NCBI GenBank assembly: GCA_965202585.1
Contig: OZ241826.1
Location: 88,970,001-89,034,000, forward strand
Length of the DNA stretch: 64,000 nucleotides
Source of the DNA: Thalia democratica
Taxonomy: Eukaryota
Direction of reading: 5' to 3'
Position numbers and translations under genes: made by a program. The notes under the pieces were generated by a model. That model was given only the letters and a program-made list of their open reading frames with translations, was not told the DNA's origin and searched no databases. How positions within the stretch are numbered: the first letter of the stretch is position 1; every line of letters begins with the position of its first letter. Of this stretch, positions 2,267 to 52,370 are shown in pieces.

Positions 2267-2485
<219 letters not shown>

Positions 2486-5400
2486 TTAGCTAGGTATTTC
2501 AATAGATTTATGCAAACTTTATATTTTATTCGCGATCGGTTTCGGTGGCAAGAGATTGCGACCTTTTCAAGCAAAAGTAAAAATAAAATATTGCTATGTA
2601 TTTCAAAATTACTGTTTGTAAACAAATTTGCACCATATTAGTATCAGCTTTTAGCGAGTTTATCCTGATGAAGAGCTAAACGAAATAATTTATTAAACCT
2701 TTTTAAAATGAGTGACTTATGTTTAAACTTTTTAGTTAAAAAATGATGAGTTTTGTAGAACTTAAATTGCTACTTTGTAAGTTCAATCATGAAAATTGAG
2801 CAAAATTTGACTCTCAATAAAGTAAAACTGCATTATGTCTCACTAGAGTTTATTCAAAGTTCGTTTATTTAAAGTATATATAAAACACACACCCATGTTT
2901 GTTTATTTGTATGTATTTTTATTTTTGGAAAACGTATAACATTTTGTTGTAAATGTATTAATAACTTTCTACGATTGTTAAATTATTAATTGTTTTCAGT
3001 GTTTTTTTTTGCCTTGTAAGGTTACAAAGAACATACGTTGAATGCAAAAAAGCTGTGCAAATAGGAAACTTTCTAATGTAAATTTATTTGTTCAATGACG
3101 ATTGGTGTTTTTTTTTTGTTAAGTATTATTACTTTATTTCTTTAGTAAGTTTAGTAGTTCAACTATATCACAAATGATTTAACTTGAAGAAAACAATAAG
3201 CGTTTAAATTTTATTACTTATGAAGAAATTTGTACAATTATTTCATATTAGTGTAAAAGTATGAATTTTAAACTTGAGTTAATGTTCAAAAATTTTAAAC
3301 AGTTTCAATGAACCTGAAACTAAACCTTGAAAGCAAAGATGCAGCGCAACCTTAATCTTTGCGCTTTTATTATTGCATGACTTTACAGTTTTTGTTTACA
3401 AAACACTTGTGATTTTATATTAAAAAATTCTTTGCAACTTTGCGCGCTGCACACACGGATTACTCTTTTGTCTTTCGCACCGACGACATCACAGGGTTTC
3501 GAGTGTTGCAGATTGCATCTTTGCGGGCGTGTAAATCCTTGTTATCAAAATAGCAAAAAGTATTAACATTTTTACATACAAAACTTGAACGCTTCTTAAG
3601 CGCATTATCTCATTGTGTTTAAGCGTGAAAAGCACCCAAAAACTGATTAAATTTTGAACTTATATTTTTTACTTGAATGTTTTACGACTCTTTTTTATTG
3701 CATATACAGACTGCAAAAATAAAACAGAGTTTTTCAACGAGCTTGATAAGTCGATTGGCAAATAAACTGAAACAATAAAAGTTTAACTGCCGCTTATGCA
3801 GAGGGCACGCTTTTATATTGCTTATTGTGCAGCGCGCTTATAAAGTACGGGCAATAAAAACGGACGGTTGAGTTTTAACTGCCTCCAAGTCGAAAACGAT
3901 GAGCAAACAAAAATTGACCCACGAAAAATTTTATACACATCACGCGATAAAAAGACTTAATTTTTTTAAAGACTCGGCCAAAAAAAAAAGCTGAAAAGGC
4001 TAAAAACAATATACTCAGTATTCGTCGAAAGGGAAAAAAAAAAGCAATGCTAAAATTAATTTTTTCAAAGTTTAGGCAAAAAATTCCATTGCAAAAAAAA
4101 CCTGCACAAGACAGTGGCATGAAAAGGGCAGAAAGTTGAAACGAGAAACACTGAGTTGCTTCATTTAAAAACTTCTCACAAAAATTCCACCGCGCACACA
4201 CACAGAACGGAAGCCCAACTTGACACCGGCCGCCCGAAATAGCTTTTTCCATTTTCGAGGCTGGGTATCGCGTTTCACAGTCACGACGCGCGTTTCCTGC
4301 CAGCGGTAACACGATCTCCAAGAATGCTGGTTGATTGTGTTTGTGTACGAATGAGGTTTCACGGGCACGCGTTCCGCGGTGAAGAATTGCTGTCGGCAGA
4401 ACGCAAGCAGATCGATGTTTTATTAATATCAGCGCGTGGAGATTGATTTTTATTTAAAAAAAATTGGTGTCGAACGACTGCTGGTTGGTGCGAAGTTTTC
4501 GCTTTTCCGCTCTCTGTGTTATTGTGCGCTTTTTCGATCGATTTTTTGTTTTGTACGTGCGCAGAAAACAAACAAGGTGGAAAAGAATTGAGCTGAAATT
4601 TTGTGAAAATTTTGAAAATGTAATAAAAAAATTTGGGACTTTATTTAAGTTTAAAAAAAAATATTGATTTGGTAAAAAATGTTTAAAAGGTAAAGATAAT
4701 TGTTTTAGTTTAGTTCAACTTAAATTTTCAAAAAAGTTATTAAGATAACATTGAAGGTAGAAATATTAAGATTTTTAAGCCGTATAAGCAAAACTCAAAG
4801 TTATGAAACAGGGAGTAATTCAATATGTAGCTTGATATATCAGTGAATTACAGATAAGCTTCATACTCTACTGAGACTACTTTTGTGTTGCAACTGAAAT
4901 ACTTCTGTTTGCCGCCTTTTATATGCAAAGCAGGTATTTGATTAATGTGATGTTTTACATGCTTTGAATTTTAGAAAAGATAACAAGCTTCTTTATAACA
5001 AAACTTTTAAAAACGTTGTTAAACCATAAAAGTTTAAGAAGCAAAAAGTTTTACTTTTTAGAACTGTTGTTTGGGTAATTTTTTTAGTTTTGAGCATTTC
5101 TTTCATATACAACCTTGATACGTAACAGTTCTGGATATTTTAAAAGAAAACTTGCTGTTAAAAGCCGTAAAACTCGAGTTTTTAATTTATTCTTGCATAA
5201 AACAATAAACTTTTACCGGCAAAGTAGCAACGAAACGTTTTAAATTGTGTTAGGTTTTGCGTGCTTGAAAAAACTTCTATAAACTAACCGCTGTAATCTA
5301 CTAATTCTAAAAACACAAATTCGCATTAGTAGCGTTTTAGCGTTTCAGCTAAACTTACATAAACTTTTGTTTGAAACCGTTAAATGTTGTTTTTAAACAC

Positions 5401-8370: not shown

Positions 8371-8539
8371 CTTCTGGTCCAGGTTGAGCTGCTGCATGTC
8401 CTGGTCCTGGCTGCCGATGCCGATGAATATGTTGCACACGCTCGCCCCCTCCTGTTCCTCGTGGTCCTCCTCCAGGATCGCCTGCTTGATCTTCCACCCG
8501 TCCCCTTTCAGGTACACGCACGGCGGCGGGCAGAAAAAC
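8371..8539 (-). CDS. Su(H): Su(H)/RBPJ exon ([15 protein letters not shown]...[19 protein letters not shown])
   Basis: Contains [10 protein letters not shown] and FIGIG..Q.MQQLNL motifs. Acceptor ATCAG, donor AAG|GTTTGT, 169 nt, phase 2/0. Confidence 0.97.
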
Positions 8540-9388: not shown

Positions 9389-9490
9389 CTTTTCTCGTTG
9401 CCGTAGCTTTTCTGCGCCACCTTGGCGTGGCAGATCTGAATTATTTGCAAGTTCTTCTCCGGGTCGTCCAGGTAGTTCTGCATCGCGATG
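9389..9490 (-). CDS. Su(H): Su(H)/RBPJ exon, start of the CSL N-terminal domain (IAMQNYLDDPEKNLQIIQICHAKVAQKSYGNEKR)
   Basis: Contains the diagnostic HAKVAQKSYGNEKR motif. Acceptor AAACAG, donor GTAATT, 102 nt, phase 2/2. Confidence 0.97.
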
Positions 9491-10217: not shown

Positions 10218-12287
10218 AATTTATTTTTCAGGTACCTTCTGCAACGCGCCAAAGATTAAATGACGAAGCTTTTGAGTCTCTGGCACGCGTCGGTTGTTCG
10301 CAGGATGGCGCTGTTCGACACCGAGTTGAAGAGAGGCGACGGGTTATCGAGAGTGCGAAGATGTTATCGGGAGCCGCGCGCGGATTTTCGAGGATTAACG
10401 CGCAATAAGAGCTTCAAACTTGCTTGAAAGTCAATGAGGCGTGACGAAGTTTTTTGGCTGGCTTCTGCGCGCTGTATGTAAATATTTTTTCTTGCTATGC
10501 CCCTGCTTAAACGTCGTAGAGCCTTTTTTCGTGCTTTTTTACTTTTTCTTGTTGAAGATATTTTCCGTGTTTACGATTAGGCTTAAGTGAAATATTAGCT
10601 TTTTAAATTACTTAAATTTTTCAAATTTAAGTTTGTGTAGGAAATTATCTAATAAGGAAAAATAGAATTCTATTAGCTGCTTAATTTAAACAAGCTTTTT
10701 ATAACAGGAATTAAACAAACTTGAAATCTTAAAAACCATTAGTTTATAAATAAATTAGACAAATTAGTCTGCACAAAACCGTATGAAATAATTCCCTGTT
10801 TCAGCTCATGTAAATTTAAAGCGAGGAGAATTCTCAAAGGAAATAAATTTGCTTCAAGCCCTTCAGCTTACCAGATGTCAAGTTTCAAGCTAGAAACAAA
10901 TAACCTTTGTGAAATTTGCTGGGAGAATTTGTTTTTTTTCTTAATAAAATTTTTTATATTATATTAAATTTTAGCTGCTTCAACACAAAGTTTTGAAAAC
11001 ATAATTTTTGCAATAGCATAATTTAAGCTTACAATACTTTTTTTTTGTAACTTAACTTCTAAGGAAATTTTTATTGCTGTGTTTAAACAATCTGGTACAT
11101 TTACGTACTCTATATATTGCTTAGTAAATGTTTAACCTTATGAACTGCTGTGCCACATAATTTAAAAGCATTAGTTTGATAAAACTTAAAGCCTTTTGTG
11201 TTATTTTTCGTGTGAACAATAAAGTTTAAAATGTCAACAAAACGCTATTTTGATTGCTTTTCTAAAACTTTTCTTTTACTTGTTTACGCTTTAACTGGAC
11301 AACAAAATAAAACAGCAACAGTTTGTTTGAAGTTTGCGGCTACAAAGAAATCAATTAACATTTTTCAAAACAGAATCTATTGTCGGCCGGTTTGTTTACA
11401 ACCGAAACACCAAATAAGTTACCATTGTTTCAAAACTGAAGCAAACAAATAAGAATTTGATGAGATTTTGAAACAATGTGAAACATGCGATAAAATGCAT
11501 TAAACATTGAAACAAAGTGCAGCAAAGTTTGCATGGGATAAGAAAACATTGCTGTTTTAGCTATAAAAAGTCAATTAAAACCCGAACCTTATTTGAACAG
11601 CTTAAATTTAAGTTAAATTTAAGCTTCTGCTAGAATAGATGTTATCGGTGTAATTATGTTGTAATTTATAACTACTTGTAATTTTTATCAGGTTGCTATT
11701 CGCCACTTAAAGCTGCCAGAGCAATAAAATCTTTTGACTAATTTAAAATTTTTTTTTCAACTTATAATTTAAAATAGGTGTAATTCAGACCTTATAAATA
11801 AATTAGCAATGGACATTAAAATTAAATTTATTTCAAAATTAGTGAAATTCAAAACTTTAAAAGTTACTAAGATGTGTAATAAACTCAATTTTCATTAAGA
11901 GGTGCCAATTTTTATGATATTTTATTAGGTTTCATGCTAATTCATTAAATAGACTTTTTGGGCTAAAAATTCAATAAAAATCAAAACAAAAATCACAAGA
12001 AAAAAATTCAAAAAAGCACACAAAAAGCCAGCAAAAGAACCCAGGCGAAAAATCGCTTCTCATCACAAACTTGGAGAGCAAACGCGCAGAGAGAGGGCAA
12101 CACAGTAAAGAGTGAGTTTCAACACGGACTGTACAACATTGCGGGAGAAGGCAAAGAGAGACAAAATGGCGTTTTCGGTTTTCTTACACTCGGCATCTGG
12201 CGGGGCACACACGCACAAACCCATCCCGCTCATTTTATTATCTTCCTTGCTCACACAAGAGCGTGAAGCAGCAGCCATGAAGGCAGT

Positions 12288-12317
12288 GATGGGAAAAATT
12301 CTGCCGCTTTTCCCACG
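12288..12317. promoter_or_regulatory. Head-to-head CSL site pair in a CpG-rich intronic island
   Basis: GATGGGAA-N14-TTCCCACG, matching the RTGGGAA/CGTGGGAA consensus. A third ATGGGAA lies at 12343-12349. Confidence 0.6.
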
Positions 12318-13995
12318 ACTTGCGAGCTGTGTGCGCGTTCTTATGGGAATTTTGAAAAATTTACACAGAGTTTTTTCTACACTGGCCTTTCGCACCGCGC
12401 TTTTGACATTTTATTCATTTGTGAGTTTTTCAATTTATTTTTTTAATAAAGTTCACAACCGCCGACACGTTCGGGCGAAGCTAATCTGTTTTTAACAAGG
12501 CGATGCGAGGTTTTAAACAAAGAAAGTTTGAAACAAGACAGCCCGCAAGCCTAATCCACTTTAGATTGCTCAGAGTATAAAGTTTTAATTTTCAATCAGT
12601 AAGTTTACACATTGCCTCTCAGACCATTTTCTCTTTCAGTTTAAATTTAATACACGGCACTTAAGTTATATAGACTTATCTTTTAATAGCTTCTGTGGCT
12701 TTTAATAAAAGTTTTAGTTACAGCTTATTTCTTTTGAGCCGATGGATATTTTAAAAGCCCACACAGTGCTTAAAAAATTTACATAGTAAATCGGTCTTTC
12801 AAAATTTAACTATAAATAAACTTTGATACTAAAGGTCTGAGTCATAAACTGCTTAAATTTAAGTTTATATAATTACAAAACAGTAGCTTAAACTTAATAC
12901 GGCATAAAGAACCTAAATATGTTAAAATAAAACACTCTTTAGCAGAGTTTGCTTTAAAAAAGTAAATCTCATCTAGTAATAAGTATTGCCGTATGAATTG
13001 TATATCGCCCGTTATTATAACTCTATGAGAGTGCTATTGCTTTTTGTTCTCTACCCACAGTGCACCGTATACTTATTTGCTTTTCATCATGCTAATGCGA
13101 TGTGACTTGACAATTTGAATGTTTTAAAACTTTTGTTTTTAGGTTCTTAAAAATTTTACTTATATTTATAGATTTTAGTTTTAATTTTATAAATAAAATG
13201 TTTTTTGCTTTAATATTTAAAACAATTTAACTTGTTTTCTTTTTAATTTCACATATATTTTTACAATTCTTCGTGTCTTAACATAGCTCTACTTGAATGC
13301 TAAATGTTAGAGAAAGTCTAATTAGTTGCAAGAAAAAGCCATAATAGTTCAACTGTTTATGCAAATTACAGACCATACAGAGCAATTTCTATTAAATTAT
13401 GACAATTTTCACAATAATATGTAATTTAGTCACCTGGCAAACAGGGTAATAAATCTAATGGCAGATATATTAATATTTTTCTAACATAATATATTAAGAA
13501 AATTTGCATTGGTATTATTCACAACCAGGTAAAACTTAAGTTTCATTAGTGTAAATAAACAAATATGAACCTAATTATGAATAATGAGTAGAAAAGTATG
13601 GTATTCAGTAGCAACTTTTTTTTAAATTATTACATTCGCCCAGGCACCAAATTAATCATTTACTAGTTTTTCTCAACTTAATCTACATTGGTTTACAATA
13701 AATTTTCATCATTGACAAACAAACAAGCAGCATTTGATTTTTAATTTTGCTTTCCCATGTTAAAAGTGCCTAAAATTCAAATTAAATTGGATTTTTCAAA
13801 TCAGTTTGAACAGTGTCAGCAGAATTTTTTTTAATTAAAAAGAAACACATGACAGTGTGAGTTTTTCAAGTTTTAAAACCAGTACATCAACAATTTAAAT
13901 CATTTTTATTTTCAAAAACAAACAATACCCACCCACTACTTAAGTTGTGAGTTTTGTATCAAAATTTATGAAGTTTTATGACGGCAGTTGTTGTA

Positions 13996-14144
13996 TAAAC
14001 TAAATGGAAATGAGCTTAATTAAAAAAAATGTTAAATTACTGAGCATTGTCAAATAAACTAAATGGAAATGGACTTAATTAAAAAAATTGTTGAATTACT
14101 GAGCATTATCAAATAAACAGTGAATGGAATATGGCTTAATTAAA
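13996..14144. repeat. 59-bp tandem repeat, about 2.5 copies
   Basis: TAAACTAAATGGAAATG...CTTAATTAAAA starts at 13996, 14055 and 14114. Confidence 0.9.
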
Positions 14145-14923
14145 ATCTGCTTAATTATTTGTTGTTTGCCAATATAAATATTTAATTTCGCATCAACACG
14201 GAAAAGTAAATAAAATATTATTTTGTTCAGATACAATAAAGATAAGATTAATTAAAATTAATTTTTAAATTGAACAAAGTAATTTTAACACCAACCTTAT
14301 AATTTTAAAAATTTCAACACCCGTGTATAAACAATTGTCTGTAAAATTTTTATGCGTATTAGAGAATTTTTATTTATTTTAAAAAACATACTTGGCAACC
14401 CTTTTAGCTGCATAAACATAAACACACACAAGCATAAACAAACTGTATTCAATTAAAACTGCAGTTAAATACTTTGTAATGCATTAAAACATTAAAAACC
14501 GGCTTTAAAAAGCAAAAAAGTTTGTAAGACAAGTTAAAGTTTATAAAAGTTTCAAAGTTTTTTGCGATATCCTACAATTAATATCTTTTTTACGAAAGCT
14601 ATATTTTGCCACGTATACGCCTTTTAGTATATGAACAGAAATCAACTTTTAAAAAATAATTAAAACTAAAACATATATATCCCATAAATTAAGATTTAGA
14701 ACCTAAATGGTTCTAACATGTTTAGCAACTCATGAGCAAAATTCTAACAAGTTTGCCACGTATACCGTTTTTTATCTTACTTCCCGTATTTAGTTTTCTT
14801 CAACTTTAAACTTTTACTAAACATCTAAAACTTTTGTGCTAGAGAAATTTGAAAAACAACTTTCTAGTGAGAATGCCAGCATTTAAAATTTTAAAACTAG
14901 TATAACACATAACAAGAACTAAC

Positions 14924-15549
14924 GAGTGCAGTTTGAGAGCCATGTCGGACATGTGGTGCAGGAGCATCATCGAGTTCTGCTGGTCCTGGTTCCGCCTCCT
15001 GCCCGACCCGGATCCCGACGGTCCCGCGCCCCTCGACGTGGACGGCCCCGCCTGCTGTTGGGTCACCACCGCTATCGCCATTTCCGTGCTCGCGCCCGAA
15101 GTCGACGCCTTCTCCTCCTTCGACTTCTTCTTCCGCTTCTTCTTCGCTTTCGGGCTCCTTGTCTGCGGCCTCGGCGAGCTCGTCGCCACGGCGGCGGTGG
15201 GGGGCGGCCCCGCGCTCAGAGGGCCCGAGCTCGACGGCCCGACGCTGGCCAGGTCGTGGTCCGTGCTGGAGCTCGCGGGGGTTACCGGCGAGGGGGTTCC
15301 CGAGTTGTGCAACCCGAACGGGATGGGCGTCAACCTGGGCATCTGGGACAGAATCTGGGGAATGGCGAGGGGATTTCCCACCGTGGCTGCTGCCGCCGCG
15401 GCCGCCACCGCCGCCGGGGAAGGGGAAAAGGGCGCGGGCGGGAAGGGGTTGGGAAACGGGGACTGGAGGGCCGGGTTGGGGATGGGCTGGCCGGTCTGGG
15501 GGTGGAGGATGTAGAGGGGAAAAGCTGAACCGAAGTTGTTGCTGTACAT
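14924..15549 (-). CDS. Su(H): Su(H)/RBPJ candidate first coding exon (long Pro/Ser/Ala-rich N-terminus with a basic NLS-like run)
   Basis: ATG at 15549 opens 208 codons plus 2 nt (MYSNNFGSAF...KAKKKRKKK...LKLH), ending at donor TC|GTTAGT (GT at 14923-14922). The phase-2 end joins exon 9768 in frame (TC+A=Ser). GC-rich like the other CSL exons. Tandem CAG CAG acceptors at 15584-15580 imply an upstream 5'UTR exon. Assignment to Su(H) rests on strand, phase and composition, not homology. Confidence 0.75.
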
Positions 15550-16137
15550 TGTACTTGATGATATACTATATATATATATCTGCTGGATGTTTTGTTGGTG
15601 TGAGTTATTTGAATTTTTGAAAAAAAAAATAAAAGAAGTTAGTTAGAAGCTTAAACTGAATGTGCTTTTTATACAAAAACAAAGATTACTTGAACACTTT
15701 TAGTTGTGTTAAAGTAGAAAGTATAGCATAGACAAAAGAAAAGTTTGTCTTTTCTTTGTGTTATAGATATTTAAGATAAGCTTTTTAAGTATTTTACTTA
15801 GTATAACTATTACAATATCTATTTCATTAAACTATTATTATTTTATAACACTCAGGGACATATAATGTTTTCAGAATCATCTCTTGAAAACTCAAGTTTA
15901 CTGAAATAGTTATACCAAGTTGTAAATAAAGTAAAGTCTTAAAACAACTTTTAAATAAACAGTTTTTTATACATAACACTGCTAAATACTCAACTCAACT
16001 GTTTCTGTTTGTTTATACTTTTAAACTAGTTTTTATTGAAGTTTACTACTGTACTAAAACTACTTAAGAAACTTTACAATGCAAAACTGCTTAAGGACTT
16101 TAGCTTTATAGTTATCTTAGATATGATGATTAATTTG

Positions 16138-16601
16138 AATGCCTGATTTGTAACTTGTATTGAAAATTAGATAAAAAACCTGTTATACAATCTAGCTTGA
16201 TGCATTACAGTAGATCATAGAAAAATTTGTTCAAGCACCAACAAGTCATAAATGCTTAACTTAACAGATTTTTTTGAATTAGAAATTAATAATTCACCAG
16301 TGCAAACTTCAAAAAAAAAAAACTAAGCTAGGTGGTAAGGTTATATAATTCATTTTTAGGTCTTTTAATGGTTTTTTAGGTTTTAAAATATCTTGACTTG
16401 ACGGTTATTTAAAATACCTGATTGGAAACTTATTTTAGCAATAGAATTAAAACCCTAGAGTACATTTCATGATGCATTATAGTCAAATCATAGGAAAAAT
16501 TACAAAAGCTTATTTCAACAAGCCACAAAATGCTTAACTTAAAAGATTTTTGAAACAAAAATTAATAATTCACAAGTGCAAACTTACAAAATATTAAGCT
16601 A
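16138..16601. repeat. Diverged direct repeat, offset about 272-275 bp
   Basis: Shared blocks TGATGCATTA (16198/16470), AATGCTTAACTTAA and AATTAATAATTCAC.AGTGCAAACTT occur in both copies. Confidence 0.8.
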
Positions 16602-18899
16602 AGTTAAACTATTTGGTTCAAACTTTGTTTAAAAGTTTGTATTGTATTGTTAAGTTACAGAAGTTAATTCAAAAGTTTGCAGTATAACTCATTTCTGATA
16701 CTTGAATTTTCCTGAAATTCACTTTTTAAAGAGTTTAATGTACAAATTAAGTAGTTAATTAAAAAGTAATTAATGTAACAATTCCTTAAACTGTGTAGCT
16801 ATTAAACTGAGATAGCTTATTAGATTAAGTATACAAAACTTAGTATGTTACTACAGCGGCGGTACACAAGTTATACTCTATAATTAAAACTATTACATGT
16901 AAATTTGTGTAACTACCATTTGTCATTAAAAAGATTTTAATTTACTTTAGTATGAATAAAAAAAGTTTGTCGTAAATTATATTAATTTTTACTTTATGTT
17001 CTTTTCAAATGCACAGACTTCTTAATTTATATTAACAAGTCAACCGACCAATAAAAGTTTGCATAAGTATAAGCATAGTATAAGTTTTATAATAACTAGT
17101 AATTAGTTTAATTACTATACCTCCAATGTTTGTAGAACACCAACTGTGAAATCTTCAGTGCTGTATGTTATATATTTTCATTTAAATAACTTATAGATAA
17201 CAAGTATTTAAATTATTTTAGCTTAATTAACTTACATAAATTAAAAAACATGTTTCCCCAACATCATAAATTATCGGCTGTATCGCTAACTTTGAAAAAA
17301 TGCTAAATTCTGTCTAAAAAAAAAACTAACTTTAGTTTTTAAACTAGCTTCACTTCTTGGATTATTTCACTTAACAACTAAAACTTTTTCTTTCTGTTAA
17401 AAACAAAAGTTTTACATCTATAACCGTCTTTTTGCATATAAAAAGTCGCCTAAAAAATTCTAACAAACAAAAACTGCTCCAAAACTTACAGAACTTGATC
17501 ATTTTACATATTTTTTCCACCTCAACTTTATCAAAGCAGCAAAGCTTTGTTGCCGAGCAAACTTCAAGCACTTAATAAAAGTTGCAACAGTTTCATGTGA
17601 GGCATTTGAGCAAAACTCAAGAGTGTGGCAACTTACAAGGCAAATGCTAGTATGTGAATCTGCACTGGCAAAAAACTGGCCTGCCTTATATTCAGTTGTG
17701 TTTTTTCTACATTGCTTTTGTTTGTGCTCAGTGTTTTGTTCGGTTTTCTCTCACTGAAAGTGATTTTATTGTCCGTCGTGTGAACATTGTTAAAACAATC
17801 GAATGTATAAGGTATGCAGTGGCAGGTACGAGCATCAGAACAGAATTGTTTAAAAGTGGTCGGTTTACTTATTTGTGTTTGTTTGCAATTGATTTCAATA
17901 ACTTGTAGAGTTATTTTCTCAAGCTGTGTTCATGCACAGATAGCACAAGAATTCAGCTCATGTCAGGTAACAATGAAATACTTATAACTTTCTCACCCAA
18001 GCTTGTACTGAGAGTTTATCAAAATATTTGTTCTGTTGAGCAATTTATAACAAACATTCTTTTCTAGAAAGTTATGAGACCAGACCTTATATAGGCATAC
18101 TTGAGCAAATATTTGTTATATCGCCGTTAATTGAAAGTTATAACTTGTTTTAGTTTGTTAAAAAAGGCTGCTTTTATTAGAAACTTTAAGTTCTGCCATA
18201 GAAAATTGAGCTTTGGACAAATTTAATATAGACCTACTGTTTAATTTATCAATTTTTTGGACTTATAAACTGTTTTTTTTTGTCATTAAACTACTTAAGG
18301 TAAAGAATTTCAATAATATGCAAACATTTAAAAATAAACAGTCTTTAAAAATGATTTTGTTTACATGCCATGATACACTTATCCAGTACCAAAAATCTCT
18401 GACCTATAGTGTTTTGGTAACCAAAATGAAATTACTTATTAGGTTCTACATGCTAATAACCATAATGTATATTACCATAAAGTAACCTTACAAATGGACC
18501 AAATTAAAATATTCTATAACTATGGTTAGCCGATAAGCTATACTGGTTCATAAGGTATCATTTAGTTTATAAAGTTGTATAAACTAGAAATTTAAAAGTG
18601 AATTTACTTAGCAGTTTCAGAGGGAGTGAGTACAGCTATTTAGAAAGATTTCATACAAAGTATTTTTATAAGATACATACTTGTGTAAACTTGTTACATA
18701 GGCTAGGCCCCTTACACTCACTTATGAAAACCAATTTCATTCAGTGCAACTTCATACTTTACAGTGACTTTACTTAGTAGTTATAATGTTTGTGCACTTG
18801 AATACCTACATACTTTTGTTACTTGTGATTTAATATGAATAGTACTTTACACTTGCCACATAATGATAACCACATATAAGTTTCAATACCATATGATGT

Positions 18900-19330
18900 C
18901 TACCTTAAGATTTTAACACGTACTGTCATATGACCTACACTGCTTCTGAAAACGCCCACACTGACCAACTGCTCTGACTTCTGAACTTCTGAAACTTTTC
19001 TCTCTGAAACTTTGTGCTTGTCGTGCCATGGTGGCAGGCCTGAACTGAACTGAGTGTTTGATGTTTGGAAGCTGAGCAACAACAAGAAAATTTTCCTTGC
19101 AAAAAGCTCGGCAGCGACACCAGTTCAAAAACTCCAGAACGACAGAGTCCTTTTTCGAACGAGCCGAAAAGGCAAGGTGAAAAGCGAAAAGTCGAAACTG
19201 TCGAAGGGACTGTCTCGACCAGTACGGACAGATCCTGTAATTTTACTCGTTTATTTTTTTGAAACTCTGAAAACGAGTAGAAATATCAAGCAGTCGATAC
19301 TGAAGCAGGGTCGAATATTTGACTGAACTT
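18900..19330 (-). promoter_or_regulatory. GC/CpG-enriched island; candidate Su(H) non-coding 5' exon or promoter
   Basis: Locally GC-rich with no convincing ORF. Possible donor AAG|GTAGAC near 18903 on the minus strand. Confidence 0.3.
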
Positions 19331-22300
19331 TGTAGACTACAATGCAATGCGGGTTTTAAAAAAGCCTTGTTTTTTAAGAATTACTACGGAATACATTTTT
19401 TGCAATTAATAAACTTTTTATACTTCGAATAGATTGTCTAACTGAGTAACTTTTTATTAAATCAATTGAAATATGTTTATAAAACAATAAACGACGGGAC
19501 CAATTGTGAAACTCTTTATCAATTTATTTCTTTTTGTTAACCAACTAATAAGAACATTAGATACAAAAGCTAAAAAAGATACATAAAGAGCTTTTTAGCA
19601 ACATTTAGTTACTATTTTTTGCTTAAATTAAAATTTTAAATTGAATAATTTCAAATCAAATTGAGTTTAATTCAAAAACAAATAATAAAATAACTTTTAT
19701 AGTTTTTTGCAAACGCTTTTATTATCAAATTTATTTATTTAATCGAATAACAAATAGTTCTTTTAATTGACAAAACTCTCTTAAAAAAAAACAGCTTTAT
19801 CAATAAACTATGAAACTAGAAATTAAAAGTTAAATAAAACAACTTGAAAACTTAACCTTAATTTGTAAAATATTGATATACTGTAAGATAAATTTAATTT
19901 TCTTTTTAGACAGCAATTAAATAAAGTCAAAGTCTATTCAAACGGCGAAAATTGAAAAACTGAAAGTAATCATTTCAAAAAATGCCGCTTATAATCGTCA
20001 AAAACTGCTCGTATGAAAAATATATAGCCTTAGCGGTGTTTTTAAATATCCGGTTTACATACAGTTTTGTAATCAAAAGCTTTTCAAAGTCGGGTTCATA
20101 TTAACTTCTTAAAAAACCTAAAAAGCTTTTTTCTTGAAGATATAATCTTCGAAAGCTGAAACGCGAACATTAATTTTTAATTCGGCTTTTGTTTAGTGAA
20201 AACACTACTGTGTTAACTTATTTATAATTCATTAGGTTGAAACACTGCTACTTACTACCCAAACAAAACTAACTTGAACTAAAGCTCGTTGCATTCTTTT
20301 AAAAACTACGTCATCTTAGTGTTAGATATAATTGTTGCATTTTACTTTTTTTAAGCATTTGTGCAAATAAAAGTTTTTTGCCAGTAAAAATTTTAGAAAA
20401 AGTTAACAACTTCTTAAAGCGTACTAATCGTAAATTTTAACAACAATTTTCATATACATTTTTTTTGTTTCAGTAGTTGTTTTTATAGTATGTAGTAAAA
20501 CAAAAACCAACTTCTTTTGATGCAACGATTTCTAATAGTGGATTGTACTTTTTAAATTACGCCTAATATTTTGAAGCATAATGAAGATACTAACTTACCT
20601 AGCATTTCAAACTCATTATTATTAAAACTGACTTAATAAAGTACTAATATATAGTTTAAACACTAAGTATAAAAACAAAATAACACTGAACAGTATTTTA
20701 AAATAATGTACATTAAAAGTAGTAAATTGTACAACTTTCTTTATAAAACTAAATCTCGTTAATCGAGAACAAAAACGTTGAAACTACAAACTAGTTAATT
20801 TCGTCATTTACTATACCAACTGCTCAACAACTCTAGACGACGTACTAAGTTCACGCGCAGCGAAGAGGTGCGAAAAAGCCTGTTTACAGTCGTGAGCAAA
20901 TAAAGAGGCGAATGTAAACGCCAAGTTATATTTATAGGGGCTGACGCGGTCAATCTGCTGCTCACTTCAAAGTTGGCCGAGTCTTAACTCTGGCTTACGC
21001 TGCTTGCCAGGCTTGCTAACGAGCAGATATACATGCGTTTGTTTTCGCGTTTTAAAGTCATCGTTAGCTTGATGCTGGGTTTTTGCAGTAAATTTGACCA
21101 GATGTTGCTTAAAAAGAAAGGGTCAGCTTAGACTAGACTTAGTTCTAAAATAAAATTGCAAAGAAACTGAAACTAGCTGTTTCTCAAAAAGTACTCATAT
21201 TACTGCATATAATATTTTTACCTACAAAAGCTATTAAAATAAGCTAAACTAAGTTTAGTTTTAAGGCTTGTTTTTTTAGTTTCAAAAACCTTTTAAGACT
21301 AGATTTTATGCTGAAACCTTAAAAATGTTTTGATAAACTGTCTTATTTTCAAACTACATAAGTTTCAATGATTTTTCATTAGCTAAAGCTACTTAAACCG
21401 CCAAACTTTATTAGCTCCTAACAAGTTTTTTTTATAAATAGTAAAAACCAAGAGGTACATTCAGACGTCACACCCACACACTAGTTTGGCGGGCAGACAG
21501 AAAACAAAACAGCCGTTTTCGTTGTGAAAAAAAAAAATCTGTTAAAAGTTTTTTAAAAGGTTTCAAAAAATTCCATTACACTTTTCTAACTAGCACACTT
21601 AACCCGTTACTCCATATGCAGTTTCAGCAAAATATTCACATGAAAATAAGTATGTGATCGCAGCGAAATTCAAGGCTGGGCGAGTTGTATTTGGAGCAAA
21701 GTTGTGCGAGGTTTTTGGATGCAGCAGTACTATGGGCTGAATCGGCTCGAAAATAGTTTCTACATGAAACAATGGGTTTGACGTGCGTTCGATCACGATT
21801 TCAATTGGCCGGCTTCCTGTAATGCGAGCTGTGAAATTTTTACTGCTGCTGAGAGTTTATTTAAATCATCAGCGTTGTGTTTGTTACGTGAGAGGCGTTT
21901 TGTGAACGTGCTTGAGCTACATTAAACTTGCGTTCAAATTTTTAGCTGCTAAACTATTTGGTGTAGACAGTAAAATTTCAAAACTGCGCAACAAAAATAT
22001 AAAACGTTTAGCATTGTCTAATATCAGTATGCGGAGTACTCGGTTTCAGGTAAAACAATAGTAGTAGTTTTGAGCAGTAACTAATTTGTTAAGAAAACTA
22101 GCTGTTATACTCTAGCTCTCTTGAAGCAATGTACCAATATGCGTTATGCAGGCTAAATTCTATGCACTTTAGATCAGTAGCTCTTAAAGTAAAAAAATAC
22201 TGTACAAATGATAAAAAAAACGGTAAAAAAATGCTAAAGTGATGTACATGCATTAAATTTTCAATATATAATACTGTAGTTGTTTTAATTTTTTTTTGTG

Positions 22301-25300
22301 TATATGATACACTAAACTTTACGTTGAACTATTAGAAAAAAATTGCTAATAAAAGACGAGTCTAACAAAATTCTGTTTTATTTTTTAACAAACTTTCTAT
22401 GCAAGTATAACAACATCATAGACACTATTGTGCATAACTATACTTTTTAGAAATACTGCACTACATCAACAAAAATGTTTTCTTCTATATAAAACTTTTC
22501 GCTTATTTAAATTCATTACATCATGCATAATCAAATCAGCTTCGAACTTGAAAAATAAAATTTTAATCAAGTTTAAAATAGCCAGTAATATTTATATAGT
22601 TACCATTCTACACGGTACATTTTGTTTACTGTAAAACAATTTTTTTGTTGCCAGGCATTTGTGTTCAACTTGTGAAACACTTCCATAGAAGTGTTTCGAA
22701 AAATACAATTCTTGTATTAGTTTAAAGATCGTTGATAAGATCCAACATTTTACTTAAAGTTTGTTTAAGCTTTTATAGACGTTAAATAAAACTTGCACAC
22801 AGAAATTGTAGTTGCAACTGGTAAGTTTTGATACAGTTGGCTTGTTTTCTGCGAAAGCAGAAAATAAAAAAACAAAAACTTTAGTAATATAAATTTATTT
22901 AGTAAAACAGTAATTCTTAGTTTACCCAACAGATAGAGAAAGTACACTTTAAGGTCAGTCTCATTTGAATATTTGCTAAACCAGAAAATTTCTTTAAAGT
23001 TTTCTTGTAACTATTTTTTATTTATACCCCTATCGCTAACCCATCTTACCTAAATATATCAAAAAATAATCAAAAAATAAAGTTTCAACTTTTAAAATTA
23101 AAGTAAAATACATAAATAAGCTTGTTAATAAAAATATTATTAATATTAACAATATGGTTTTTAAGCTAAAACAGAGGTAATACATATGGTTTGTAGAAGA
23201 ACAACTAAGTTTACTTTTAAAAGTAAGCTTAAGAAAACTGTTAGATTGTTTAAATTTAAATTTTTGTAGTTCATTAGTAAGCATATAAGGTTTGCTTATA
23301 AAGCAAAGTAGTACGATATCAGTAATTCGTTATTTGGTAATGTTTTAGCTTAATTATCAAGTTATATCAAGTTATGTAAACATTGACTTCAAAAATGAGC
23401 AACAAACTTAAAAGTTAATAAGTCAATTAAAAATTAACGATTACAAATTTCTTCAAAACCTTTACAAAAAATATTATTTTAAGAACTAATTTATAACAGG
23501 TTAAAAAATTTAAAGCCCCATTCTAAAATTATTACTTTGAACTTTAAAGGATGTATTAGTGATTAGCATTAATACAACCATATAAGTTAAAAGCTGCAAA
23601 ATTTAATTTAAGCTTAAGATATAGATAAACAAATGAAAGTTTATTTAGGTTATTAAAAATCAAGTACAGGTTCCTAATAAAATAAAAAACTAAAATTAGC
23701 TTAAGTTGAAATAAAAGCAGTCTTTTATAACTTTGTATTTTTGTTTAGAACAAAGTTTCCTAGTACGTTTAAAAATCCAATTTTTTAATACATGTATTAC
23801 TTTTTGCAAAAAACTTGTTAAGCTTTGTAAATGATGCAGCTGAAAAGTTTCGTTTCTTTTTAGTTACACTTTGAAAGCTGCACGTAGTCGAAACGTTGTT
23901 ATTGATTTTTTAATTCAAGCATCCCATGAATAATTCCCAAAACTTTAAGCATTGCAACCCAAAAAGCAATTATGAATTATTAAACACCAAAAATGAAAAT
24001 TTCAAAGATTTGCAGATTAAAAAAGTTCAAAAATCTGTTAGTAGCGCTTCGTGCAAAAGCGTTTTACTTGAAGTGTTACTCATCAAACAAAAATAACATT
24101 TTTTTGTGAGAACAAATAGTAATAACCATGTTTTAGCTTAAAATGATTTAGGATCAAACCCAAGTTTGAAAGTTTTTACTATTAAAATTCATCTTAACTT
24201 TTGATAGACGTATTATAAAAAAATTAATAAAACACTATGAAAAAACAATCTATTTTGTGTACAATTAATTCGAATGCAAACTTTTTACTGAAAGAATTTT
24301 TCTAAAATCTATTTGCTACAGCAAAGATATAAACAATTTTTTTTAAAAGAGACACACTTTTCAAAAAGTCTTTAAGTATAAGTTAAACTAATATTCTATA
24401 AAATTTAAAAACTGATTTTATTCCTTGTATATTTTCAAGTAAAGATTTAAGCAAGGAACTTTGACAGTTTACTAAACTATGAGAATAAAGAAAAACACTT
24501 TTCATTTAAATCACTTTGTTATACAACTTTTATTCCTTTACTACCGCCTGACAAGCGTTTCTTGATGTATTTCAATTAACAGCGCATTAACCGATGTTGC
24601 GGTTTATTGAAGCAATAACTGAAATTCACTAAAGTTATGATTGACAATTTGCAAGTGCGTTTTTCGATCAAAACTACCGAACGTGTATTGGTAAAAGGTG
24701 ATCAAAGTAATTTTGCAAGCAGCTGATAAAGAAGGTTAAAAGAAGAGCAAACAATGGAAAATGATAAGCGTCTCACGCTAGGGTGTAGCTTTAGAGAAAA
24801 ATTTAAAATACGAAAATGTAGATTATTTTAATAAACTTAGATAAATTAATTTATCAATTACCAAAGTATAAAAGTTTTATTTTATGAGAATTTTTATAAA
24901 ACAAACCTAAATTAACAAAAAGTATAAGTTTATTACAAACTTATATAGCTGTATGCTTTAGATTTAAGCACTATACTTCTTGCAGTATCTAATGCAACTT
25001 AGTGAAAACTTGAGTTTGCCTTGCAATCAGGAAGTAAATGCCTAAAAATACTTGGTCACAGAAATAGAGTTGAAATAGGTGCGTACTTAACTTTTCATTA
25101 CTGAATAAAATTACCAAAAAAGTCTGAAATTTAAATCACTGCAGCTCTTTCTAAAAGTTCTGTAACTAATTGATTTTCCAAAGTGATGAAAACTAAATTT
25201 ACTAACATCGTAAAACTTTGCAGTAAAATTTTTACTGAAAAATTTAATTGACTAGGCATTTTGTATAAAGTCTAATAGTAAGTTTTAAAATACTTTTTTT

Positions 25301-26852
25301 TTTCAACCAGTAAAGTATACTTAAAAAACGTTAACTGTTAAACAAGTTATTTAAAAATCCAGTTAGTTTAAGAGATTTTTTTATTCGAACGACCTAAATA
25401 AAACTTAGACAATACTGTTAGATGCTAATAAAACAGTTACTTTATTTTCTTATTAAGAACTTAACCAACTAAGCTTAACAACCAGCTTATCATATTTAAA
25501 TTAAATAAACATACTTGTAAAAACGTTTAAAATGATGCTCAAATTTTTTTTTTTAATTTCATTATTTTTTAATACTTCTCAAACGACAAAACTTCAATGA
25601 ACGTGCCAAATGTGTATTGCAAATAACAAATCAAATATTTGTTTTGACACATGGGTATCTACTCGTCACGTAATAGTTTAATATGCTACAGATAAAAAAA
25701 TAATAAAGATCTGTTTTCATTTTGGGCGTAGTTTTTTAATTAAACAGCACTTTTTAATAGTTTTTGAAATAAGAAAATTGATTGCAGCAAAAAATTAAAA
25801 ATAAAATTTAAATCATCAAACTACTTTAACCAATTTAGAAAAATTGTATCTCATATAATATTGTTTTACGATAATGATAATTTTTTTTTTTTATTTGTTG
25901 AAAAACTCTTTAGCCGACTATAAAAATGAATAAGTAATTGTATTACGTAAATGTATTAAAGTTTTTTACTTTTAGTAATTGAAACTATTTATTACTTTTG
26001 TGTATCTATTTGTTACTTACTGCAATATTCAATTAAATCATATGATCATGTGTAATTTAACATTTTTTTATTTAAAAATTCTAGTATACCTACAATTTTC
26101 ATCTAAGAGAAGAAAAATAAAAGCTTTTATACTTTGGCTGTTGTAAGATTTGTTTTAACTTAAATTATAGTTTTAAATTGACTTGAAAAAAATAATAAAG
26201 ATTTATTTATGAAAAAAGTTAAGTATTTAAAACAAAAAAAACATGAAGTAGCAAGTTTGTTTTTAGAAACTATTTAAAAATTGTTTAATTAAAAAGCTTA
26301 CTTTGAGTGTTTATGAAATACATCCAAACAAAAGCTTTAAACATTAGTTTTTATGAAACTAGTTCGTAATTTATAACTTATATCAAATACCGCATACAAT
26401 ATAAAAAAGTAAAAAAAGATCAATTTAGTTTTAAAATTGCTCTTGTACCTATATATTAAAGTTTTTCTTAAATTTACAAAAGCAAATATGTACATTGGAG
26501 AAACATTTAAATAAAAACCAACATGTTAACAAAAATTATATATATTTGTTATTTCAAAATTCAGCTGCATATAGCTTAATTAAAAACCTGAAAGGTTCTT
26601 GTGTTTTTTTATAGCATTTCCGAAAATACTTCAACAAAATTTCAAAACAACAGCTGTTTGAGCGTTTAATTTTCTGCACAACGCAACTATTATAACATAA
26701 TCTCTGCAGTAAGCTGACCAAAGCGGCACGAGCTAATCAAAAACAAACATTTACCTGGCTAATCTACAGTGAAATGTAAATGTTGACAAAACAAGATTAA
26801 CTGCTCGTTCCGCGAAACGCGATTATTTTTACAATCAACTTTGTAATAACTT

Positions 26853-26883
26853 GTTGCTAGGCAATAACTTGTTGCTAAGTAAT
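26853..26883. promoter_or_regulatory. Tandem pair of RFX X-box-like motifs
   Basis: GTTGCTAGGCAAT (26853-26865) and GTTGCTAAGTAAT (26871-26883), generated by an 18-bp tandem duplication. Confidence 0.35.
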
Positions 26884-29800
26884 CGGCGGAAGCAAAGCTA
26901 ATTAGGCGAGCTTCATAAGTAGAAAACTTTGAAAACGCAGGTTACTATACATAAATAAAAAACTAAATTGCTAAATGATTATATGTTTATTAACTTAAAA
27001 AGTTAATACTGATTGATTAAAAACGTTGATGAAAGTAAAGTTTTTACGTTTAAGTTTTTAAGTAAAAAAATGGTTTAACCCTCTAGTTACAAAGTATTAA
27101 AGTATAAATGCTATAACATTTGTTTAACTTTAAATAAGTACTTAAGTTTATTCAAAATACTATTATTACTTAAAAATTATACATAGTTTTACAAAACTGA
27201 CGATACAATTACTATTTAGCAATTAAAAACTATATAAAAAAATTTCTTACACATTTTGTTTATATATTTTTTTTATATAAGTAGTCTATAAGCTTCATAT
27301 ACTATTTTGTTTTAAATTTTACAATATCTATGCTTGTAAGTATTACTATACCACGTATTTTTTCAGCTATTTAAAGTATGTTTCTTTTATTATAACCTCT
27401 ATATGTATTACTAAAATTTAAAACAAGCTATGCACTCATTTTATATCAAAATAAATCAATAAAATTTTATAAAACAAAATATGTTATTAAAAAAAAACTT
27501 ACGAAAGCTTTCTTCAAAGAAACTTCGTACTTTGAACCGTAAAATTCATATTAATAATGTGACCACCATGCTTAATTTCAAAATTATTTTATTGGCGTGC
27601 TAATTTTAATTTACTTTTTCAAATTAGTGGTCGAGTCAGTTTGAAGTACTTTTGAAAGCCAAAAACAAACAAGTTTTTGAAGTTTTGAGATTTTTCAAAA
27701 CTTTCGTGTTTATTTTTTATCAAGGTTATCACTGTCATGGAAAAAAAAAAACAGTACTGAAATAATCAAAATTAAAGATTGTATCATGAGCAAATGTAAA
27801 GCACTTAAACTCAATAAGAATTTTTTTTGCTATACCAACATACACAAAAAACTGTTGACAACTTTTTAGATAGGTTTTAATAAAAGTGTTAAGCTTTCGT
27901 ATACGTTTAAATACTTGTTGTAATTTAGATTTAAAAATTAAAGCTTATATTGTTATTGTAATTTTAACTTAAAAGAACAATTTTTAGCAAGTTTTGAATA
28001 TATTCTTTCCAAACACTCATACAAAGTTTAGCTAATAAACTTGTTTTTAACTTAAAAGTAACAGTCGTTAAAAGTAGAATAAAAAGAAATAAAAAAAGAT
28101 AAAATAAAAATATAATACATAAAGCTATAATAAATTAATTTTACTAAACAGTTTAAAAAAGGTCTACACTTTTACTTGTAACCAACTTTTGATTTATAGT
28201 TTGTTTGGTCATGTTAATTAAACTAATTATCACGAAAATAAGTTTTCAACTAAAACTGTTCTCTTACCTTGAAACTAGTTCTAGTCAGTCATAGGTACGA
28301 ATTATCACTTTAACTAGCTTTGACTAATTTTATTTTCAAAAGCAAACTTAACTTTTAGTTAATTTATTCATGTTGCAAAAATAAACACCTAGGTAAAACT
28401 ACACTTTTAATTTTAACTATTTATGCGATTGATAATTACTAGTAGTTTTAATTTATCCGTTTTTAGAATATTTTCTTTCACATAGTATAATAAGCCGAAT
28501 TTTTTCAATCCGTTTTATAATCAATTTCAATTCTTTATAGATTTTAACTTTTCACAAAAAAGCACATATTCTAAATAAGCTTTCATACAGCAATAGTTCT
28601 ATAAATGTAATTTTTAGTTTAAGTTTTTAAATAAAAACGTAAAAACTATTTAGCTGATTTTTTTAGATTACTGATCATGATAATTATACCTAGCTTTTAT
28701 TTAAACCGGTGTATTACTGTTATTAATTTGAACTAACATGAATCTCAGTTGTCTTATTTATCAAAGGTTTTTAGTTATGAAAAACAAAACTTACTGTGTT
28801 AACTTTTCAAAAATGTTTTGCAACAAATACAACTTAATTTTTATACTTGATCTCGTAAAAACCTCTTGTGATGATTTATTACAGTGTGAACAAGTTTTTA
28901 GTTTCCCCCAGTTTTATGTGAACTGTTTGTTTAGTTTTTTTTACACAAAAAATTTTCAGTAAAAGCCTGTGCCTTTCACACAGTGTTAATTGCTGTATAA
29001 ACAAGCCCGTTTGTTTTCTAAGGCAACTTGAAAAATAAAATACTTCCAAAGAATGAACCAAGTGTCTAAATAAAAAAACCATACAAACTTCTAATTATAG
29101 GTGTAATTAGACTTAGAGTAAACATTTGTAATGTTTTCATTTTCCTTGGTATGTTTACATTTGATTACAGTTCAAGTTTTACAGCCTTGAAACCTGATTT
29201 AAGGTTGTCAACTTGTTAGATTTTACTGTAGATTAACTCCCAAAAAGAACTTGAGCACATAAATACCTGGTACTTTGAATCCAGTTATCTTAAAAGTAGT
29301 TTTCTTTTATTAAAACCGTTATGTATCTGTCTTAGCATTTTTATCCCGTTCAAACTTTAGTATAACAAAAACATCAACTTTTTTTCTACATTATCTGGAT
29401 TCTTTTAGTTATCTTTAAGAATCTCTTTTTGTTTTTTTTCATAAATAAGCGTAAACAATTTACTAATTTGCACAGTAAAATAAACCAGCAAACTTTCTAT
29501 TAGCTAAATGCTATATTAAATTTAAACTGAAAGAAAACTTGACAAGTTTAGTAACCTCTAAAAAACTAGATTTTCAAAATTTAAAACAAGTTTAGCAATC
29601 TTTAAATAAAATCTGTAAGTCTTTTATTAACTTAAATTAATTTTTAAGTTTGCAGAACCAAGCTTAAACATAAATAGTATCGATGGTTTAACTGTGCTTA
29701 AAATTTTTAAGGGTAAGTTGTTTTTTGGTAGATATTTATACTTCATAATTTTAAAAATCGATTTTTAATTGATATGTTTTGCTTCCAGCTTATTAAGTAA

Positions 29801-30099
29801 AAGTGTTTAAAAAATTGTTATGCCAAAAGAATTTGCAATCAAAATACTATATTGTTTAACTTCCAGAAAAAAATTTAAGCTTCATATCTTTAAAAACTAA
29901 ATCTAAAACTCTAGGTTATTCGTATTAATTATTTCTTTTATTCATTAATACTTATACTTGAATATGCTCTGTTTTTAAAATTTAGAAAGTTTCACATTTG
30001 TTTCTGAAATCTAATCTACAAAGTTTATCAACCAAAAAGCTAGACGTGTTGCCAAAATCAAGCTTCCAATAAAAATATTTATTGATTTTTTCTTTCCTC

Positions 30100-30600
30100 A
30101 CACTTTTACTCATTTACGAAACACAAAGCTCACCTCTGAGTCCAAACTCTGAGACTCTTCGTTCAGGGTATTACCCTTCTTCCCTCCGATAACATCGAGT
30201 TTCCACGGAAACTGCTCGCGTGGGAAAAACGGAGGCGAAATTCCCACAGCGAAAGAGATCGGCGAAAAAAAAAGGGCGATTAGGCGAGCGCGCACACTCA
30301 CGCAGGCCAGCCAGCAGGACGGAAGCGGCGCAGCAAGAGCAAAAACGAGAGCGGCTGCGTTTTATCCTTCTCTCGTTTTGCGTTTGTTTGGCCCGTTTGA
30401 AATTAGCCGGGCTTAGCGAGGCTTAAAGTATCGCGTTTTTGTTTCAAGCCAGTTTCTTTTTTCGGCCGTGTGATTTTGCGCTCCGGTTTTCGCAGGTATT
30501 TTGACCGAGGGCTCGCGCGCCCGTTCAAGTGCTTAAGCTTTTATGTGTGTGAGAGCAAACAAATTCCGCGAATAAGTTCTCGCTTGTAGTTGTTCTCGTG
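30100..30600 (-). promoter_or_regulatory. CpG island; probable distal promoter or 5'UTR exon region of Su(H)
   Basis: Most upstream strongly CpG-rich block relative to the minus-strand gene. Contains a paired CSL site and has no credible ORF. Confidence 0.45.
30219..30248. promoter_or_regulatory. Head-to-head CSL site pair
   Basis: CGTGGGAA-N14-TTCCCACA; both half-sites are perfect YGTGGGAA. Confidence 0.7.
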
Positions 30601-32051
30601 TTAAAAGCTAATTTAATTTCAAACATGAAAACAGTTGTTTTAAATACAACAGAAATTTTCATCCGAAAAAAAAAGTTTCAAAGTTTTATCATGTTTATCT
30701 TTCAAAGTACTTTTGTTCTATAAAATTAACATTTTTACACTGTTGACAACTAAATAGATGTTATGCTATGATGTTGTGTTTGCTTTTAACAAAACTAAAT
30801 AAAATCATTATAAATAATTAGTAGGATTAAAGATTTTATTCTAATTTTTTTATCTTGATTTAATTATCTTTTTTAAAACTTTTTTACAACAATTTTACAG
30901 CAGTTGACGTTTCACTAGTGAAAGGAGCTGTTATTTAAAAATAACAAAAACAATTGATATAAGTCAACTAAATAATCTTTGTAAGTAAATATAAAAGTTT
31001 ATTAGTATATCTAAAACTTTCAAAATTTTCTCTTGTTTTTGGAAGTAAAAAGTTCGTCAATAGATATGAAATGTAATTTAGAAAGGCTTTTGGCTGAGCT
31101 TTTTTTAAATTTAGATGGATATTCGTCAAGTTTAAAAAATAATCAAGTTTTATGAAGTTTTATTCAAACAAAAAAAAGTCTTGGGGGCGTCATATATTTT
31201 TACGTTGTTAGTACCGAATAATTTCTTGCCCCTGGTTTAAAGTGATATGTTTAAAAATATTTAAAATAATTATGTATCTAGCATAAACTAAGTTTTTAGT
31301 TGATAGCAGTTTTCAAAAATTTCACTAAAATTTTTATTTTGTTTCAAATTACGTTATAAATCTAGAGCTATTTGACTCACAAAAGTTCTTTTGGTCTGTC
31401 GTATACCATTGCAGTTTTAACCTGCGTCTAGTTAAAAATTTAAGGGACAGTAATGCTTGCTATTTAACCAGTTGAAAATCGAATGTAATGTAGTAACTCA
31501 AGACTCTTTATTAAAAAGATCTTTTAAAATTTATTGGAGTTTCTACTATTAGTATATTACAAAGTTAAATTTAGTTTGATTTTAGATTGAATCTTGTTTA
31601 AACTTAATTAGAAACATAAAACTAAAAGCTGAGGCTAAAAAAGTAAACTAAAAAAAATTTTAAACAGTATTTTGTTTAAAGAACTCCAAATTTAGAACTT
31701 TTATGTAGATTCACACCACATAGTTTTAAAAGTGCGGAAAACCTTACTATGTAATTAAACATTATTAAAATAAAATGCACTCAGGGAATATTTTATCTAC
31801 CAATTAAAACACTTGTTTATCAAATACTTAAATAGTATGGTAAAACGGTTTGACCTCAAAAGTATACAGTTAAAAATAAAGTTATTTAAATTCTATAACA
31901 CTTATGTTTTTTTGTTATTAAAGTAGTATTTTTTAAGGTCCCCTTTGAAAAAATAAAATAAATTTCAATCAGATCTCTCAAAAAACTACTCATAAATATG
32001 CCTAAGATTTTTTTTTCATTTATCACCAACTCAAGAACTAAAAAATATCTA

Positions 32052-52260: not shown

Positions 52261-52370
52261 TTAAGTATACTAGCCGCATTTAAATTTAAACATTTAAATA
52301 AAATTTATGTTTAACTAAAACATCTGAACTAAACAGTTTAACTTCAGCTAAAGAACTTATAATTTAAGAT

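Follow-up and report, generated by a model that had tools for sequence, protein, structure and literature searches.

The question raised by this locus is whether the gene of CSL (Su(H)/RBPJ/LAG-1) in Thalia democratica carries, in its own non-coding DNA, paired sites by which CSL would act on CSL transcription, and whether the gap inside these pairs defines a geometry of its own. The DNA considered is a stretch of 64,000 nucleotides (contig OZ241826.1, forward strand, positions 88,970,001 to 89,034,000, i.e., C1:88970001-89034000 of the 801-Mb genome that was searched). The whole stretch is called the window and positions are counted from its first letter. Two pairs of head-to-head CSL sites, pair A and pair B, are localized there, and both have a gap of 14 bp. 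Consensus CSL sites are present in the non-coding DNA of the CSL gene itself, as in autoregulatory elements of the lag-1 and Su(H) type. With moderate confidence, and from sequence evidence, A and B are regarded as real CSL-binding elements for a feedback on CSL transcription, with a gap outside the range permissive for Notch dimers. They suggest a CSL feedback loop, not a species-wide rule for the spacing of Notch sites.

Sequence and rarity of the two site pairs

Pair B (30219..30248, + strand) reads CGTGGGAA-aaacggaggcgaaa-TTCCCACA and its two half-sites, CGTGGGAA and TGTGGGAA, both correspond to the CSL consensus. Pair A (12288..12317, - strand) reads, on the reverse complement, CGTGGGAA-aagcggcagaattt-TTCCCATC; one half-site is consensus and its partner, GATGGGAA, matches only the looser form RTGGGAA. 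When A and B are placed in register, 20/30 positions are identical. The coordinates, the sequences, the 14-bp spacers and this 20/30 match had been given in a preliminary description of the window and were found exact on re-reading. That description had mentioned no CGTGGGAA word other than these two, and a new count over the window likewise gives 2, for 0.32 expected.

The sole significant local similarity between A and B is CGTGGGAAAA.CGG. Of the 11 bases of the TP1 element given in PMC7685452, CGTGGGAAAAT, 10 are matched by CGTGGGAAAA, with which both pairs begin. Both pairs contain the full 8-mer CGTGGGAA followed by an A-rich 3' flank, i.e., an optimal CSL site. No homology between their flanks was found beyond the 30 bp; A and B are thus not a recent duplication, and the possibility that they are duplicates of each other was ruled out.

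At least two CGTGGGAA words were obtained in 4 of 100 dinucleotide shuffles of the window. When the sites are relaxed to TGRGAA...TTCYCA and gaps of 0-40 bp are allowed, A and B are the only head-to-head pairs of the window, both with a gap of 14 bp. Two pairs of equal gap were obtained in 0.3-0.5% of the shuffles keeping local composition (block shuffles, relaxed 6-mers). The pairing of A and B is taken as non-random, although the scan was very large and a look-elsewhere factor has to be kept in mind.

Sequence-paired sites (SPS) are described as head-to-head sites 15-17 bp apart (PMC8494340) or defined by a gap of 16 bp between two sites in this orientation (PMC7685452). All four mammalian Notch intracellular domains (NICDs) favour 16 bp, with a tolerance of ~+/- 1 bp, and in mammalian reporter assays dimer-dependent synergy is absent once the gap departs from 16 +/- 1 (PMC7685452). 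On a canonical SPS, two CSL-NICD-MAM complexes are loaded cooperatively by means of ANK-ANK contacts. In their sequence, canonical SPS are characterized by: (i) inverted, head-to-head CSL sites; (ii) a high-affinity YGTGRGAA word in one site or in both, a cryptic partner being allowed; (iii) a gap of 15-17 bp between the 8-mers, with an optimum at 16. A and B share the first two characters and differ by the third, both gaps being 14 bp. In the same manner, the SPS at Hes1, Hes5 and E(spl) resemble A and B by their head-to-head orientation, by CGTGGGAA in one or both sites and by their location near a gene of the Notch pathway; the difference is again the gap, and the HES gene of Thalia democratica itself has the 16-bp form.

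Gap lengths in the genome and at the HES gene

The pattern GTGGGAA-N(11-19)-TTCCCA gave 75 rows genome-wide, mostly from one repeat family. Once repeats and duplicates are collapsed, roughly 25 independent loci are obtained, i.e., about 3 per gap. The loci with a gap of 14 bp are A, B and one duplicated locus on C7. If each gap has about 3 loci over the 801 Mb, the probability that a second pair of the same gap lies no further than 18 kb from the first, which is the distance between A and B, is ~1e-4. For the pattern YGTGRGAA-N(10-20)-TTCYCAC there are about 21 independent loci, and the distribution of their gaps is flat (five at 12, two at 14, none at 16 and four at 17); the two at 14 are B and an AT-rich site on C10 (C10:24200623). 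The pattern CGTGGGAA-N(10-20)-TTCNCAC occurs at six places, including B at 14, one at 16 and three at 18 to 20, two of the latter three being the same sequence. B is thus the only CGTGGGAA-N14-TTCNCAC of the genome.

Neither of the two genome-wide spacer surveys has a peak at 14 bp. The search for such a peak had been proposed in the preliminary description as a check of a lineage-specific geometry, and its absence had been named there as a result that would count against it. The other 14-bp pairs (C7 duplicate and C10:24200623) look like chance. The C7 pair is attributed to chance since its surroundings are AT-rich and belong to a 99.6%-identical segmental duplicate.

The abundant 16-bp class was likewise rejected as evidence for the use of SPS, as it is carried by a transposable element. 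The sequence GTGGGAAAATCATGAAGATTAAATTCCCA, a head-to-head CSL-like pair with the canonical 16-bp gap, is present in about 45 or more copies. All ten copies that were fetched lie in a repeat that exceeds 1.5 kb and is dispersed in the genome (e.g., C1:46328987 and C10:11713391; L009-L016): eight are 91-97% identical to each other and two form a diverged subfamily (76-80%). The 16-bp pair in this element is probably a coincidence, and such a dispersed repeat could seed Notch-responsive sites. A family with a 32-bp gap is also carried by repeats. Five identical copies of a perfect head-to-head pair, TGTGAGAA-17 bp-TTCTCACG, are observed on C4 (C4:5662949, 5991230, 6352753, 6622866, 6893393). They are ~270-360 kb apart, their gap is within the canonical range and their distribution suggests a large segmental array.

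These counts bear on the possibility that A and B are due to chance, GC-rich islands yielding TGGGAA-like words among which a large scan ends up finding matching pairs. This explanation would account for the lack of genome-wide enrichment of the 14-bp class, for the noise-like appearance of the C7 and C10 pairs and for the large look-elsewhere factor of the scan. It accounts badly for a second pair of the same gap within 18 kb (~1e-4, or 0.003-0.005 with relaxed 6-mers), for the fact that the only head-to-head pairs of the window at gaps 0-40 are A and B, and for the strong conservation of island B described below. Chance is therefore considered very unlikely.

Only one HES-type bHLH gene was found (C6:49110142-49110273, in the region C6:49110142-49110808, L034); it encodes MKTPNSLKNDRRASKPLMEKRRRERINKSLNELKTILLAAMRKD. 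At ~500 bp upstream of its ATG lies CGTGGGAA-agcgatcgacgcgagt-TTCGCACC, with a gap of 16 bp (partner TTCGCAC), and a proximal single site, TTCCCACG, lies ~320 bp from the ATG. The element has no site at the 14-bp position. Such an arrangement, in which a strong site and a degenerate one are 16 bp apart, is the classic layout of Hes1. The word CGTGGGAA thus marks a classic Notch target in this genome, and the strong words at HES, A and B are alike: CGTGGGAAA, then CG a few bases later.

The search for further HES genes gave the following results: (i) no match for the Hairy_orange domain; (ii) one gene, HES itself, for the degenerate pattern EKRRRxRIN; (iii) only the HES exon itself in a protein search made with this exon; (iv) 31 bHLH exon matches, of which the 17 including the basic region were translated, and none of these 17 is HES-type. 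The comparison of spacing at Notch targets is thus based on a single gene.

The HES element also bears on the identity of the protein bound at A and B. Another factor, acting as a homodimer, could recognize half-sites of the form TGGGAA/TTCCCA; it would then be incidental that the pairs look like CSL sites and lie in the CSL gene. TGGGAA cores are common to several factor families (Ikaros, Rel/NF-kB half-sites, ZNF143), dimeric binders typically use inverted repeats such as these, whose gap is fixed at about two helical turns, and the second half of A, GATGGGAA, deviates from YGTGRGAA. On the contrary, both pairs have the full CGTGGGAA and the A-rich 3' flank of an optimal CSL site, the same word is present upstream of HES, inspection of the two pairs reveals nothing that matches the longer consensus of ZNF143, and a location in the CSL gene is what autoregulation predicts. 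Binding by another factor is thus judged improbable.

On C5 (C5:58915554-58917586; L002, L007, L008) lies a second paralog of CSL, in which exons for the LAG1-DNA-binding and BTD domains are recognized. In the 60 kb scanned around it, only a repeat-like pair with a 26-bp gap was detected. GC-rich islands ~18-23 kb upstream of this paralog contain TGGGAA words recurring at ~131-141 bp, which are possibly a tandem repeat.

The Notch receptor gene (C7:15662630-15672000; L055) has LNR, transmembrane, ANK and C-terminal exons, and its 3' 40 kb contain no relevant pair. The ANK exon (L055:3717-3953, ..VKQLLE..LRSRAVD..) appears to keep the K/E/R dimer contacts, in comparison with human NOTCH1. The contacts of the NICD dimer are K1945, E1949 and R1984 (PMC7685452). 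A structure search with this exon returned generic ankyrin proteins only and no solved Notch structure.

The identical gap of A and B could also mean that a head-to-head pair with 14 bp forms a distinct, spacing-locked class of Notch/CSL response element, devoted to CSL self-regulation and existing alongside the 16-bp SPS at HES. In this case the gap would be held at 14 bp by contacts between the proteins of two CSL complexes. The complex in question could be a co-repressor-bridged CSL dimer, one in which the second CSL paralog takes part, or a Notch complex modified in this lineage; a 14-bp class could, e.g., assemble a CSL-CSL or co-repressor-bridged complex excluding the canonical NICD dimer. 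Two pairs with unrelated flanks share orientation and exact gap (an identity of about 1 in 41, given two pairs within 0-40 bp) and have CGTGGGAAAA.CGG in common. Weighing against such a class, the instances are only two, the 14-bp gap is not in excess in the genome, HES has 16 bp and the ANK exon seems to keep the dimer contacts. In favour of this class, mammalian data include small unexplained bumps of activity at 12-13 bp gaps, and non-optimal gaps shift the response from dimer-competent NICD in favour of non-dimerising NICD (PMC7685452). That A and B have the same gap is a hint of a separate architecture, with n=2, and a spacing-locked class is considered unlikely. As for the lineage-specific geometry of paired sites, proposed earlier with 14-bp spacing expected especially at hes/hey genes, it is not supported: the spacer surveys are flat, the C5 paralog has no such pair and the sole HES-type gene has the canonical 16 bp.

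Position in the CSL gene, conservation and proposed feedback

The CSL gene is on the minus strand. Its LAG1-DNA-binding exons are near 9.4, 8.5 and 2.4 kb and its BTD exons precede the start of the window. The exon coordinates were placed from the sequence: exon 1, the first coding one, at 14924..15579 (ATG at 15549, phase 2), exon 2 at 9389..9490 (start of the LAG1 DNA-binding domain, in a phase that fits exon 1), exon 3 at 8371..8539 and exon 4 at 2269..2446, all on the minus strand. The placement of exons 1 and 2 puts pair A in intron 1. A distance of 14.6 kb separates pair B from exon 1; B is in intergenic DNA on the 5' side of the gene, with repeat-rich sequence beyond it. Of the two pairs, placed earlier inside the CSL locus, only A can be assigned to the transcription unit of CSL; no transcript ties B to the gene.

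Exon 1 has a putative acceptor AG at 15581-15580 and a donor TC/GTTAGT at 14923-14922. Its ATG context, the AG ~30 nt upstream and the GTTAGT donor are kept in two Tara Oceans contigs (L053 and L054) from relatives with 84% and 65% protein identity. A splice acceptor, cis or trans, therefore probably precedes exon 1. A polypyrimidine tract and the conserved AG ~30 nt before the ATG are observed at 15549-15620 in the three taxa, and this AG may be a splice acceptor, possibly a trans-splice site in the case of a tunicate-like marine animal.

Both pairs lie in GC-rich islands. These had been called CpG islands; the richness in GC is real, the CpG status is not, since the window (28.5% GC) has a CpG observed/expected ratio (o/e) of 0.95 and the genome is not depleted in CpG. 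Island A, which holds pair A in intron 1, extends over 12004..12561 (12004-12411 + 12447-12561). Its first part, 12004-12411, has a GC content of 0.47 and a CpG o/e of 0.95, and a third TTCCCA word is present in the island at 12344-12349. Island B (30107-30610) has a GC content of 0.50 and a CpG o/e of 1.42.

Island B coincides with a conserved non-coding block (30116..30586). The comparison was made over 27500-33499 with DNA contigs (X6) of a sister taxon, called organism B, which is a close relative. Over these 470 bp, organism B has 4 substitutions and 1 single-base deletion, i.e., about 99% identity. The contigs flanking island B on both sides have 24-69 substitutions plus gaps and are 85-93% identical. 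Island B as a whole thus appears strongly constrained, and conservation in a related genome, which had been suggested as a check, is observed for it in one close taxon. The island is probably under strong purifying selection. The deletion, at 30265, is outside pair B, and pair B itself is probably, not certainly, unchanged in organism B.

No Rfam match was obtained in the window, and no Pfam match in any frame across islands A and B. An ORF-homologue search (open reading frames, ORFs) gave no homologous ORFs for island A. A pattern scan of JGI metagenomes for island A gave 4 GC-rich matches, rejected as chance since they have no homology to the window, and the Tara Oceans exon 1 contigs are too short to reach site A.

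The location of CSL sites in the intron and upstream DNA of the CSL gene predicts a CSL/Notch feedback on CSL transcription. CSL would bind two separate cis-regulatory islands of its own gene, B as an upstream conserved element and A as an intron 1 element, and, with or without the NICD, would feed back on its transcription in the manner of lag-1 and fly Su(H). Each pair would accommodate two CSL molecules facing each other, with their centres about 22 bp apart, and would act as closely apposed non-cooperative sites or disfavour the dimer. The canonical Notch dimer, with its ANK-ANK contacts, is most likely not assembled on A and B, because their gap is 14 and not 15-17 bp and because HES keeps 16 bp. 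The sequence of A and B, its non-randomness, its position and the conservation of island B are shown; that CSL occupies the sites, that Notch is required and in which direction the regulation goes are inferred.

Two known cases of autoregulation can be compared. In Drosophila, Su(H) sites in the autoregulatory socket enhancer reportedly drive a Su(H)-dependent up-regulation of Su(H). This enhancer is said to be downstream, with several dispersed single sites; as in the present locus the sites are in the gene's own locus, and unlike A and B they would not form head-to-head pairs of fixed gap. In C. elegans, the first intron of lag-1 contains multiple LAG-1 sites and ChIP peaks, with positive autoregulation in the soma, according to what PMC7153901 states on this gene (see also Luo et al. 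2020, a secondary citation). As here, lag-1 has CSL sites in the first intron of the CSL gene itself and in the DNA upstream; they are multiple canonical sites, with no fixed-gap pairs reported in that account, whereas two discrete pairs, recognized by their sequence, are found in the present case. The constructs of Crow et al. 2020 (PMC7685452) also have head-to-head consensus sites outside 15-17 bp. These were engineered, whereas A and B are a natural, repeated and, for B, conserved example. The same authors propose that non-optimal gaps select against dimer-dependent activation (PMC7685452). Of the autoregulatory loop with a geometry of its own that had been proposed for this locus, the loop is retained, in view of the non-random optimal words, the islands of the CSL locus and the precedent of lag-1, and the geometry is not.

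Several points weigh against a role of A and B in CSL feedback: (i) in mammalian assays, cooperative loading is not obtained at a gap of 14 bp (PMC7685452), and fully independent sites would not be expected to share an identical gap; (ii) the C5 paralog has no 14-bp pair in the 60 kb scanned; (iii) the constraint spans the whole of island B and not the sites specifically, and the evidence of conservation concerns island B only, of the two islands; (iv) island B is covered by no contig of the metatranscriptome runs X1 and X2 or of the small run X4, suspected from its size to be RNA, so that an exon at the island has no support, even if such a gap in contigs proves nothing; (v) B is consequently linked to the CSL transcription unit by its position alone; (vi) very many windows having been read, the look-elsewhere effect persists.

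If A and B are bound by CSL, the feedback loop would pass through elements that miss the dimer-permissive spacing while HES keeps it. This would be a natural enhancer grammar separating dimer-dependent from dimer-independent Notch outputs, an idea that so far comes mainly from engineered reporters, and CSL autoregulation, known from worm and fly, would be extended to another animal lineage. If the pairs are unbound, they would be a warning on motif coincidences in GC-rich islands.

Other features of the window

About a dozen short GC-rich non-coding islands are observed amid the AT-rich introns in 1-31000, e.g., in the CSL locus at 4131-4570, 6035-6496, 10077-10537, 18927-19256 and 20797-21855. 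Among these other islands of the CSL locus, only 4131-4459, which is intronic, has a YGTGRGAA word, a single CSL word at 4173..4180 on the minus strand. The additional islands may be further regulatory blocks.

Two inverted near-duplicate ORFs (..KKRCLESVK.FKKLA.N.TT..NRFFND..) are present at 31998-32375 (+) and 33505-33798 (-). The bin 31900-32099 has a word depth of about 4000x in the run of organism B; a high-copy repeat is therefore localized just upstream of island B.

A block of ~4.5 kb is duplicated (49671-54200 and 59675-64000), the second copy being ~10 kb downstream of the first. Each copy contains an intronless BTB/Kelch-like ORF, intact in the first copy (450 aa) and split in the second one (125-aa + 331-aa). 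Each of these ORFs is followed by GC-richer arrays that are open in many frames (HFCT/LLHG-type repeats).

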